Assembly (NCBI RefSeq): GCF_040938485.1
Contig: NW_027271330.1
Span: 434,001 to 498,000, forward strand
Reading direction: 5' to 3'
Length of the DNA stretch: 64,000 bases
From: Diadema antillarum
Taxonomy: Eukaryota
Under the pieces are notes generated by a model that was not told where the DNA came from, searched no databases, and saw nothing but the letters and a program-made list of their open reading frames with translations. The position numbers were made by a program, and so were the translations under genes. How positions within the stretch are numbered: position 1 is the first letter of the stretch; each line of letters starts with the position of its first letter. Below, one piece after another: positions 4,013 to 48,155 of the stretch.

Positions 4013-4556
4013 ATGATAATGTGGGTGCTCGTTGCCCTGGCAGCGCTCGCTGCTTCGCCCGTGATGCCCGTCGGAAGCGCAGCCGAAGCCGACGGGGATT
4101 TTTCCCCGATGAACTCTCGCAACTATCCCCTCGAGCTGACGGCCCGGATCACCAAGCCGACGTGCGTGGACATTCCCAGCGACCTCAGCCTCTGCCAGAA
4201 CATCGGCTACTCCCAGATGCGAATGCCGAACCTCTTGGATCATGATACGATGGAGGAAGTCAAGCACCAAGCCCAGAGCTGGGTCCCTCTGCTCATGCAG
4301 CGATGCCACGCAGAGACCCAGCTGTTTCTCTGTACCCTCTTCGCTCCAGTGTGCCTGGACCGGCCCATCTACCCGTGCCGGTCTCTATGCGAGGAGGTCC
4401 GGGGTGGATGCGCTCCGGTCATGGAATCGAATTGCTTCCCTTGGCCCGCCATGCTGGAGTGTTCCAAATTCCCACCCGACAACGACCTTTGCATCAAGTC
4501 TGATATGCGAGACCAGAACGGAACCGCCACTTCTCCAACATTTGAAATTTCTCCAG
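4013..4556 (+). CDS. sfrp1/5: Secreted frizzled-related protein (sFRP1/2/5 group), coding exon 1: signal peptide and Frizzled cysteine-rich domain
   Basis: ATG at 4013 is followed by a hydrophobic leader (MIMWVLVALAALAA). The CRD (CVDIPSDLSLCQNIGYSQMRMPNLLDH...TQLFLCTLFAPVCLDRPIYPCRSLCEEVRGGCAPVM...FPWP...CSKFPPDNDLCIK) is typical of sFRP1/2/5. It ends at a strong donor CCAG|gtaagt, phase 1. The 4013 and 4019 ATGs cannot be distinguished as the start. Confidence 0.96.
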
Positions 4557-7259
4557 GTAAGTAAAAATTGATCATCAAAATCTTCTGAAAATACTGACCT
4601 GCTAGACAAATTAACATTTAAAACTGCTATTAAAATTCGTTTTCAGGATTGACTGAGTGCAGATTAATTTTCTGTGCTTCATGAAATCAGGGAGGTGGTT
4701 CCACCTCCCTGATGAAATTATGGTCATACTCCAGGAAGGGGTCCAACTCCCTGGCCATACGTCTTTTAACCCTTTCCCATGGCCTCCCAACAATCACGAC
4801 AATGTCGTATATTTATACCTTTGCTCTGCTACAACTCTTCAAGCTCTCTGCACAATGAAATCATTCGCTCGCGAGAGCAACTGTGTGAAAATCTCACCGC
4901 CTAATTTGTGATTATCAAAGGATTGATGTAAGTCGGTATTACCCCCCCCCCCCCCAAAAAAAAAAAAAAAAAAAAATCTGTGTATGAATGCTGCATTCTT
5001 GCGAACGTATTTGTATAATTCCACGGTTTCTGTATGCTTCGAAGAGTAAGCGATTCTTATCTGTGAATGTACTACCGTAATATCATTAATCATTTTAATA
5101 CATCCACTACGAGCGTTCTGTGAAATATTTAGAATCACTGCCTTAATAGCATGGACACAAACAAACTTCAAAGTTTTCTTGAACGAGTCCCAATTTCTGT
5201 CAGGGTCTCTGATAAAATGCGGCGCTCCTGCGCGCCGGCGGGACAGTAAATTACCGTCGAATGAGTGATGGCGTAAAATCATCGAGACCGAAAATCGGCC
5301 TTTATTCAGCGCTCTCACGCAACAGTAATTGATTTCTTCCACTTATCTTCCAAAATGGGTGAATTTAATTGAATGTCTCTCTTTCTCCGTCACTCGTCCT
5401 TTCCCCTCTGTTACTTCCTTCCTCTTCTCTTCACTTCTCTACCCCCCCCCCCCTCTCTCTCTCTCTCCTCTCTTTCTGTGTATACACAGTATGTTAGGGC
5501 TGCACATGATTTTCCCCGTAAAACTCATTTCTCCTGAAAACAAATTGGATTGCAATTAAATTGTCGTTGGTGGCGGTATATTCCTGACCGTATTGCACTG
5601 TAACAAGCAAAATGATGGCTTGGGAGGTCGTGTCGACATCGCTTGATTCATTTCTCAGGGTTTGAGCAGGTTTATTCTACCCTCCCCTTCTAAAAGCATG
5701 AGAGAGTATTAAAGGGACCGTGCAATGCATTGTTGATTGTATTGATTCATAATAACTTAATCATCCATTGTGTGGCCTAAAGAATATCTGAGTATGTGTC
5801 AAATATTTTATAATAATTTTTCTACTATTTCTCTTCAGATTACTTAGATACCCCCCCCCCCCAAAAAAAAAAAAAAAAACAAAACAACAACAACAACAAC
5901 ACTTCTTATAGGCAAATCTCGATAAGATATATGACACGTAATTAGATATTAATTTGGCCCCATAAGTGATCTTGAAGACCAGGTATCATGAACTTACACA
6001 CCTCAATCATGCTTTTGCATTGTATATTGGCCTACAGTAGTTCACTTAAAATATAAATTACATCATCGTTCCAGCTTGATCAACGTGGTGGCAACCACTA
6101 ACAACGATCCCGGAAAACATTTAATATATGTAAAGTCCCTCAATTTTCTTATACCGAGTCCGATTTGGACCTAACTCCTTCTATTCCTTTACTTTTTTAT
6201 TTTATTTCTGATTTCACTACGCGCATTAAAGTGAATGATGTGGGGACAGGGCGTAAATGCGCTTCCAGGTTGTGTCTTTTCATTTTACAAACCTGTACTT
6301 TCGTATTCATTTGAGCTACAGTGATATAGGCCTATATCATTATACTTAATGCACTGTGATCTCCCTTTGTGCTTCGTGAATGAGGGCTGATATCCTTTAA
6401 CTGAAGAAAATTTTGCCCTTGTACGGAGGACTTGCAATTTAATCGCAAAAATCTATTTTGCAGATCGACGCCAGTTTCAAACTTTCGTAAGTTATATCCA
6501 AACCACCTGTTACTCTGTAATCGAGAAACCAAACGACCACTTTATAGCGTCCCTATTTTTACGGGATCTTCAAGACATCTTCAAGGCAATTATTCACACA
6601 AACACACACATACTTCTTCCCATACACACAAACACACACACACTCACACACGCACGCACACATGTGCCTACACTCTCACGCACATACTCGTAATACACGC
6701 ATCTGCAGTTCATGAATCCCATCAAAAGTGCAGTCGGATGGCCGTAAATCGATTGTCGCCAAATGACCTAATAATTGCGGGAACCAATTTTTACTCGATA
6801 AAAGCCATCATGCATCTTATACCATGTATATAATGTTGGTACGACCATGGTACGTCGACCACTTATGGTACGACCATGCAGCTACAGCGCCATGGTCACC
6901 CTGACGGGACGACAGATACCTTATGCAGAAATCCGACATATTCTTAAAAATGGCTTCGGAATTGTCGCGAAAATATTACTCTGTGCGAAAGATGCTTGGG
7001 AACAGTAAACCTCGTTATCATCACACAACAGGGAGTTGCAAAAGTAGTGAGAAAAAGGTCACCTAAAGTACATTGAGATATTTGTTTTATTGAGACAAAA
7101 GCGGAAGAGTTTGTTACGTCACCTAGGCATATTTCGTTACAAAGATATATCATAATACTAATATCGGATTTTTTTTTTTTTTTTGTCCTCTTGCGTTCAC
7201 GAGGAAAGCGTCGGCATGATTGAGAGTATTCTGAAGAATTTAATCACAAAACAGGTTAA

Positions 7260-46715: not shown

Positions 46716-48062
46716 GCGATGATGGTACTTTTGGTTGAGGTCGACAGATAAATTTTCAAACGGACAGGCGGACAAAGGGTGCGTGATAAGGACGGAAGCG
46801 TTCCAAGTAGTCACGTACTCACTTCGAGACATCGCACGAAGGGCATGTCAAGACATTTCAACTTTTCCTTCCTTGATATCAACTTATGACATCCCCCTCT
46901 CACCGAAACACATCCTCTAAGGATGGCCATGATGGCTGAAACAAACTGCATCCAGTGAGGGGAAGGCAGGAGCCGCCTTGCTCGCGGCTCATCATCCGTA
47001 ATCAGTAATGGGCTGAGATTGGAGAGGACAAAATATTGGCGTCTCCTCTCAAGTCTCGATCTCTCGATGTAACCGACGCGACATTTAGTGATCTCCCCTC
47101 GACTTTCTATAGGTACTTGTCTCCGTTTCCGACGAATTTGCTTCCCTGAAAAAGTGGCAGCTGTCTTCGTCTGGAAGTTTCTATATCCACCAGAGTTTTC
47201 GGAAAGAGTTTTATTATGTGTTTTAAACGTCTCTACTGAACTCAATCTACGAGAAGACATTTCCATATACATAATTAAAATTCTAATCTTTTTTGAAATT
47301 CTCTTTAAAAATGCAAACAACAACCATGAGAATATCAATTAGTTAGTGTGATGACAACAGCCCGAATCTACAAGCCTCAAGAACAAGGATCGATTTATAG
47401 TCTCCTGCAAAACGAAATCCCGTTCATTGCCATTAGGTAACAACAAAATAAGAATGTTTACAAAAACATTTTTTTTTCGTAATCCAGCTGGAAGACGTAA
47501 TAGCTGCTTTCATGTTACATGTCTTTATGTTCGTTACTCAAACTTGAACCTCACATTGAATATGGTGTCCAAGTTTGGGTGACGGAAAAGTGAGACATGA
47601 TTTTGTGTCAAAAGTTTTCTACTTTCTATCCATGTATATCGATCGCAATAATACCGACAAGGCTTGCAATTTACTTTGTTGTTTCTTTTCTCCTTAAAGC
47701 AGAACTTTGTATTGAAATTTAAATTCCGGACAGAAGACTGACGGCTCAATAAATGCATGTTTCTATAGTTCCATACATCAATATTCTTTGATACTTACGA
47801 TTCCTCTTCTCTCCCTCGTCATCTTTCGTTTGTTCATCTGCGTATTCCATGAGACAGATCATGTTGCAAAATGATGTATAGCTGTTTACTTTTATTAACC
47901 TAAAACTGTATTTGCTTGTTTCATAATCCGTTTTGTTTTGTTGTTTTGTTGTTTTTTTAACAAAAGAATATACACTATATACACCTATGACAGTGATGTC
48001 AAGACGTTCATTATATAATTGTAGTTGTTTCATACTTTCTACTTGCCTTTTTCTCGTCACAG

Positions 48063-48155
48063 TCTTGGGTGAGCGGTACATGACTCTCTTCACACAATGC
48101 CGCAACGACAGCACGCCCGAGGTTCTGAGACAGAAATTCTGCACTTCTGATTTCG
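48063..48155 (+). CDS. sfrp1/5: sFRP coding exon 2 (93 nt): linker and start of the NTR/C345C domain
   Basis: Polypyrimidine acceptor ttgcctttttctcgtcacag| and donor TTCG|gtgag, phase 1-1, which joins exons 1 and 3 in frame. Translates to (V)LGERYMTLFTQCRNDSTPEVLRQKFCTSDF, matching the C-x(13)-C-x-S-[DE]-F start of sFRP NTR domains. Confidence 0.9.

Follow-up and report, generated by a model that had tools for sequence, protein, structure and literature searches.

A cysteine swap shared by echinoderm sFRP1/5 proteins and a proposed bond between their two domains

The sFRP1/5 gene of Diadema antillarum and its cysteines

The protein sFRP1/5 is a secreted Wnt antagonist that combines a Frizzled-type cysteine-rich domain (CRD) with a netrin-like (NTR) domain. 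We analyzed a stretch of 64,000 nt from the echinoid Diadema antillarum (assembly GCF_040938485.1, contig NW_027271330.1, positions 434,001 to 498,000 of the forward strand; in the following called the window), in which an sFRP1/5 gene of three exons lies on the plus strand from position 4013 to 53538. The canonical pattern of 10 cysteines in the CRD and 6 in the NTR domain was not found in this gene. All ten canonical CRD cysteines and the NTR cysteines 2 to 6 are present, but the CRD contains an 11th cysteine and the NTR domain has only 5, since its first cysteine (Cys1) is replaced by phenylalanine. The total thus stays at 16, distributed over the exons as 11, 2 and 3. This exon-by-exon count agrees with a preliminary description made from the sequence alone, whose cysteine positions, coordinates and counts were all correct.

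The additional cysteine, Cys141, directly follows the long CRD helix, which spans residues 123–139 in an AlphaFold2 model. It stands in the motif M-E-S-N-C-F-P-W-P, where Frizzled-8 reads Y-G-F-x-W-P; the correspondence of residues 140 and 141 to Frizzled-8 was taken from a HMMER alignment of an orthologue. In the NTR domain, at least 90% of the sFRP1/2/5 sequences in an alignment of 112 have cysteine in the column of Phe191. Fourteen of the 16 cysteines are at canonical positions with canonical partners, which therefore leaves over Cys141 and one cysteine of the C-R-C motif.

The splice sites of the gene are canonical (GTAAGT/CAG for intron 1 and GTGAGA/CAG for intron 2), with GTC and GTT as the split codons. 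For alignments and folding, we used as a full-length stand-in the NCBI protein annotated as “secreted frizzled-related protein 5-like” from Diadema setosum (439 amino acids; in the following called P0125). Compared over the three exons, the window gene is 97.7% identical to P0125. Exon 1 matches its residues 1–181 in 181 of 181 positions and exon 2 its residues 183–212 in 30 of 30, while exon 3 is identical in 217 of 227 positions. Two assembly gaps, seen as runs of N at 9906–10043 and 43439–43566, both fall within intron 1. Because the exon borders correspond to residues 181 and 183 of P0125 and the split codon to residue 182, no coding sequence is hidden in these gaps, and they leave only the length of intron 1 uncertain. 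Human SFRP1, SFRP2 and SFRP5 are three-exon genes as well (PMC8417734).

An alternative exon 2 with an intact C-x-x-C motif, lying within intron 1 or hidden by a gap, was considered and discarded, as in P0125 exon 2 follows exon 1 with nothing between them. Searching the window by tblastn with seven orthologues, including hemichordate and crinoid proteins, yielded only 48063–48155 and no further exon. A motif scan of the plus strand gave just two matches, at 36632 and 39093, both unrelated. The segment 33422–33517, readable as L-G-E-R ... Y-T-R-C-H, weakly resembles the start of exon 2 in frame; with a tblastn E-value of ~1–2 and no splice acceptor, it is taken as a chance similarity.

The assignment to the sFRP1/2/5 group rests on several results. 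The CRD matched the Pfam Fz family (PF01392) with an E-value of 3.1e-28 and 99 bits (cutoff 32.1), and exon 3 alone matched the NTR module (PF01759) with 29.7 bits (cutoff 21.9). The hydrophobic N-terminus encoded by exon 1 is a putative signal peptide. The top database matches were sFRP5-like and sFRP1/5 proteins, and the echinoderm sequences grouped with hemichordate and protostome sFRP1/2/5 in a tree calculated without an sFRP3/4 outgroup. As judged from these comparisons, the deviating cysteine pattern is a clade-wide variant, and the orthology to sFRP1/2/5 stands.

Table 1 Features of the sFRP1/5 gene in the window (positions refer to the window).
Feature	Position	Strand	Description
Exon 1	4013–4556	+	Start codon, hydrophobic N-terminus, Fz CRD with 11 Cys, start of linker; ends in phase 1
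Asn140 codon AAT	4430–4432	+	Aligns with the lipid-groove Tyr of Frizzled-8 (Y-G-F-x-W-P)
Extra CRD Cys141 codon TGC	4433–4435	+	In M-E-S-N-C-F-P-W-P, at the Gly position of Y-G-F-x-W-P
Intron 1	4557–48062	+	~43.5 kb; contains both assembly gaps
Exon 2	48063–48155	+	End of linker and start of NTR (F-T-Q-C ... F-C-T-S-D-F); phase 1 to phase 1
Phe191 codon TTC	48089–48091	+	Position of NTR Cys1, cysteine 11 of canonical sFRP1; reads L-F-T-Q-C
Cys194 (NTR Cys2)	48098–48100	+	Predicted partner Cys268, by analogy with Sizzled 159–231
Cys208 (NTR Cys3)	48140–48142	+	Predicted partner Cys319, by analogy with Sizzled 176–281
Exon 3	52853–53538	+	Remainder of NTR, long acidic, then Arg-rich tail; stop codon 53536–53538
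C-R-C motif, Cys266-Arg267-Cys268	53011–53019	+	Cys266 without its usual partner; proposed partner of Cys141
Cys319, last NTR Cys	53170–53172	+	In exon 3
C-terminal extension, Cys-free	53173–53535	+	Predicted disordered, predicted local distance difference test score (pLDDT) <55

Three kinds of further observations were made on the gene and its surroundings. First, a cysteine-free C-terminal extension of 60–120 residues, acidic and then rich in arginine and lysine, is predicted to be disordered in the sFRP1/5 of echinoids, asteroids and holothuroids (seen at 53173–53535 of the window and in P0121–P0127, P0147, P0164 and P0165). A basic tail also occurs in several mollusc, annelid and priapulid proteins and is absent from those of ophiuroids, crinoids, hemichordates and vertebrates. 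Second, five products consist of the CRD only (P0001 from Lytechinus with 192 amino acids, P0002, P0003, P0006 and P0007) and stop a short way after read-through of the exon 1 donor, which in the window lies at 4557. These CRD-only proteins may be artefacts of annotation or of short contigs; such an isoform, if real, would carry the extra cysteine without its proposed NTR partner. Third, the window contains a tandem repeat at 62485–62732 with a 29-nt unit in 8.6 copies, also readable with a period of 87 nt, a microsatellite of (CAAT)n at 2515–2600, and, just inside intron 1 at ~4944–4977, a run of C that passes into a long run of A.

Distribution of the two changes among sFRP1/2/5 proteins

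We collected 235 sFRP1/2/5-type proteins by three word searches and examined both sites. The extra CRD cysteine was present in 16 of them, and all 16 are from echinoderms or echinoderm-like. The carriers comprise the echinoids Diadema, Strongylocentrotus and Lytechinus, the asteroids Acanthaster, Asterias and Patiria, the holothuroid Eupentacta, the ophiuroid Amphiura, and the crinoids Anneissia and Antedon. Whether the two changes go together had been left as a question in the preliminary description, and the answer is without exception positive. In all 11 extra-Cys proteins that reach into the NTR domain, representing all five classes, F/Y-T-Q-C takes the place of C-x-x-C, versus none of the remaining sFRP1/2/5 proteins that include an NTR domain (~145), which show neither change. 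Three proteins of hemichordates, the sister group of the echinoderms, and those of amphioxus, vertebrates and protostomes have the glycine together with an intact Cys1.

A few sequences initially appeared to combine the glycine with a missing Cys1. These exceptions were artefacts of pattern matching, caused by C-x4-C or CC spacing variants, and each of the proteins has at least six NTR cysteines.

Maximum-likelihood analysis placed all 11 echinoderm sequences in one clade (support 100/97), such that the swap requires a single change. By its distribution, the swap is a shared derived character that arose in sFRP1/5 on the echinoderm stem and was retained in all five classes.

The cysteine pattern has also been altered in a lineage of its own in arthropod sFRP5-like proteins. 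In P0156 (from an arthropod-like contig), P0178, P0183 and P0197 (the chelicerates tick, spider and scorpion), a seventh NTR cysteine is found in the motif K-x-x-x-C-K-K-A, and CC replaces C-x-C.

The residue preceding the extra cysteine behaves differently. The preliminary description had also attached significance to an exchange of tyrosine for asparagine at position 140, next to the lipid groove. The asparagine is indeed there in the four eleutherozoan classes, the echinoids, asteroids, ophiuroids and holothuroids, but its weight was overstated, as crinoids have phenylalanine or tyrosine at this position despite their extra cysteine. Among proteins with the normal glycine, position 140 is tyrosine, phenylalanine, histidine or asparagine, the latter in the hemichordate Glandiceps. 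With such variability, the exchange is unlinked to the cysteine swap.

A proposed disulfide bond between the CRD and the NTR domain

A known arrangement of cysteines provides a possible explanation for the swap. In crystal structures of Xenopus Sizzled (PDB 5XGP, 7EL5), an extra CRD cysteine, Cys115, is bonded to NTR Cys1, numbered Cys156 in this protein; the NTR domain has two further bonds, 159–231 and 176–281, i.e., 2–5 and 3–6 (PMC9437010). The Sizzled residue numbering used here was re-derived from a chain alignment.

We therefore propose the following course of events by analogy. In the ancestral state, NTR Cys1 would have been paired with the first cysteine of the C-x-C motif. On the echinoderm stem, Cys1 changed to phenylalanine or tyrosine, and the glycine in the CRD loop adjoining the Wnt-lipid groove to cysteine. 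The orphaned Cys266 now most likely bonds with the new Cys141, which would result in a covalent tether between CRD and NTR domain next to the lipid-groove exit. Such a tether would replace the intradomain NTR disulfide 11–14, and the other NTR bonds would be Cys194–Cys268 and Cys208–Cys319. Since a disulfide holds Cys1 next to its partner in canonical sFRP1, Cys266 is expected at about the place of Sizzled Cys156, facing the same CRD segment. We consider it rather probable that the swap is such a rewiring of an intradomain NTR disulfide into an interdomain Cys141–Cys266 bond.

Functional data on a vertebrate protein point in the same direction. The NTR domain of medaka Sfrp1 is inactive when it carries the mutations C177S and C180S, which affect Cys1 and Cys2 (PMC2542364). 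Because mutation of these two cysteines abolishes the activity, a loss of Cys1 in nature would be expected to require a compensating change.

We modelled two orthologues with AlphaFold2. For P0125, an alignment of 112 sequences was used, giving a mean pLDDT of 74 with both domains confident and the tail disordered; for the brittle-star protein P0004, an echinoderm-only alignment gave a mean pLDDT of 70. The top two-domain match of both models was Sizzled (Foldseek E-values of ~1e-17 to 1e-18; VIA-align Z-scores of 17.7–18.2 over 220–230 residues). Taken individually, the CRD model superposed on Fz CRDs with a root-mean-square deviation (rmsd) of 1.2–2 Å, and the NTR model matched TIMP-3, complement C345C and the PCOLCE NTR domain with Z-scores of 10–12.

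Several points weigh against the proposed Cys141–Cys266 bond. It builds on a pairing in the sFRP1 NTR domain, 11–14, 12–15 and 13–16, that was reportedly determined by Chong et al. in 2002. The preliminary description had treated it, as 1–4, 2–5 and 3–6, as established; the latter two bonds agree with 159–231 and 176–281 of Sizzled. Because both changes map to one branch, their co-occurrence counts as one event, and as far as the sequences indicate, this is a single evolutionary event without repeated independent covariation. Among the sequencing runs found, there was no spliced RNA contig around the gene, as the contigs were DNA-like. Finally, the two domains together could be fitted to Sizzled at an rmsd of 7.8–15.9 Å only, and the modelled domain orientation therefore differs from both Sizzled crystal forms. 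These two forms themselves differ from one another by a hinge rotation of ~90 degrees (PMC9437010). The mismatch in orientation neither favours nor rules out the bond.

The same observations can be read in a different way. The odd cysteines might be free or buried, or the CRD cysteines re-paired among themselves, and two functionally unrelated changes might have become fixed on the same stem branch, which was long enough for this; that there was only one evolutionary event and that the domain orientation modelled by AlphaFold disagrees with Sizzled would both fit. We nevertheless regard this explanation as unlikely. Selection usually acts against unpaired cysteines in secreted proteins, and both residues are invariant in five classes while their neighbours vary. 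Moreover, a loss of Cys1 was seen nowhere else among the ~145 proteins with an NTR domain, and its mutation together with Cys2 inactivates the NTR domain of Sfrp1.

Less probable still are intermolecular disulfides, by which the odd cysteines would link sFRP1/5 into covalent dimers or form adducts with another protein. The cysteine parity fits this equally well, and CRDs of sFRPs and Frizzled have been reported to dimerise (PMC2542364). A dimer, however, would not require the loss of Cys1 alongside the gain in the CRD, the precedent in Sizzled is intramolecular, and two reactive sites per monomer tend to give polymers.

The preliminary description had cautioned that each substitution is one G/T change and could be an error or a private allele, and had pointed to the reads at 4433 and 48090. 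A contig from run X2, an independent DNA study of the same organism, spans 47971–48383 with zero differences from the window, so that the region of the Phe codon is reproduced exactly. Exon 2 of a related species (run X5) carries differences at 48085, 48091 and 48097, each at a synonymous third position, and its Phe codon is TTT. That these differences are all synonymous, including TTC to TTT, is a signature of purifying selection on F-T-Q-C. Reads were mapped for 47900–53600, and the codon of the extra cysteine at 4433–4435 rests on the identity to P0125 and the conservation across echinoderms. With these results, the 100% identity of exons 1 and 2 to the D. setosum model and the presence of the same residues throughout the echinoderm classes, errors of sequencing or assembly, or an allele private to the one animal that was sequenced, can practically be dismissed for both substitutions.

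A contig from run X1, the likely source sample, showed 18 differences and 5 gaps over 47900–48324, all of them intronic around exon 2, and is probably a second haplotype.

Comparison with Sizzled, Crescent, canonical sFRPs and Frizzled-8

Sea-urchin embryos are a main model of the Wnt network, and sFRP1/5 has a core role in regulating their Wnt patterning along the anterior-posterior axis. If the echinoderm protein is tethered, it is unlike vertebrate sFRP1/2/5, and what is known of hinge movement, ligand binding and the functions of the domains may not transfer from one system to the other. An effect of the tether on domain orientation or ligand binding is something we infer. It is conceivable, though doubtful, that a tether near the exit of the lipid groove altered binding, toward another Wnt selectivity or toward a Sizzled-like inhibition of Tolloid/BMP-1 in a phylum without Sizzled. 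The active-site aspartate of Sizzled (in C-L-D) is conserved in the window gene, but Phe94 of Sizzled is not.

We found no prior description of the echinoderm pattern in the literature on sea-urchin sFRPs and Platynereis frizzled-related proteins, of which our coverage was incomplete. An interdomain disulfide gained by loss of an NTR cysteine and gain of a CRD cysteine is already known from Sizzled and Crescent and is no new principle. The echinoderm case, which is phylum-wide, differs in both positions and in keeping the opposite half of the broken bond.

The CRD of Frizzled-8 in complex with the lipid of Wnt8 (PDB 4F0A) resembles the modelled echinoderm CRD to ~1.2–2 Å rmsd, and its M-x-x-Y-G-F-x-W-P segment aligns directly. 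The window gene differs from it in having cysteine instead of glycine and asparagine instead of tyrosine. With canonical sFRP1/2/5 (vertebrate SFRP1, SFRP2 and SFRP5 and hemichordate sFRP1/5), the window gene shares orthology, the Fz and NTR domains, three exons, the ten CRD cysteines and NTR cysteines 2 to 6. The canonical proteins differ by the glycine at the site of the extra cysteine and C-x-x-C at the NTR start, and no interdomain bond has been described for them.

Sizzled and Crescent are the closest parallels. They have in common with the echinoderm protein the two-domain sFRP fold, the 11 CRD and 5 NTR cysteines adding up to 16, an extra cysteine in the CRD segment that runs from the long helix to the W-P motif, and the surrender of the same NTR disulfide, that of Cys1 with its C-x-C partner. 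The interdomain bridge has been described as absent from sFRPs other than these two (PMC9437010). The details, however, differ. Cys115 of Sizzled lies 5 residues before the conserved tryptophan, and the echinoderm cysteine 3 residues before it, at a position where Sizzled has glycine. Sizzled keeps Cys1 and lost its partner, whereas echinoderms lost Cys1 and keep both cysteines of the C-R-C motif. Sizzled and Crescent are vertebrate paralogues that inhibit Tolloid/BMP-1; the window gene is the single echinoderm orthologue of sFRP1/5.

Because the hemichordate and chordate counterparts of sFRP1/5 are canonical, the echinoderm swap is independent of Sizzled and Crescent, and as it arose in an sFRP1/5 orthologue, outside these vertebrate paralogues, it is convergent. 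If the tether exists, it represents a second independent origin of a bridge thought to be unique to Sizzled and Crescent and a natural experiment on the purpose of this bridge. By analogy, the echinoderm bond, if present, would mirror the interdomain bond in Sizzled and Crescent and would have arisen by convergence.

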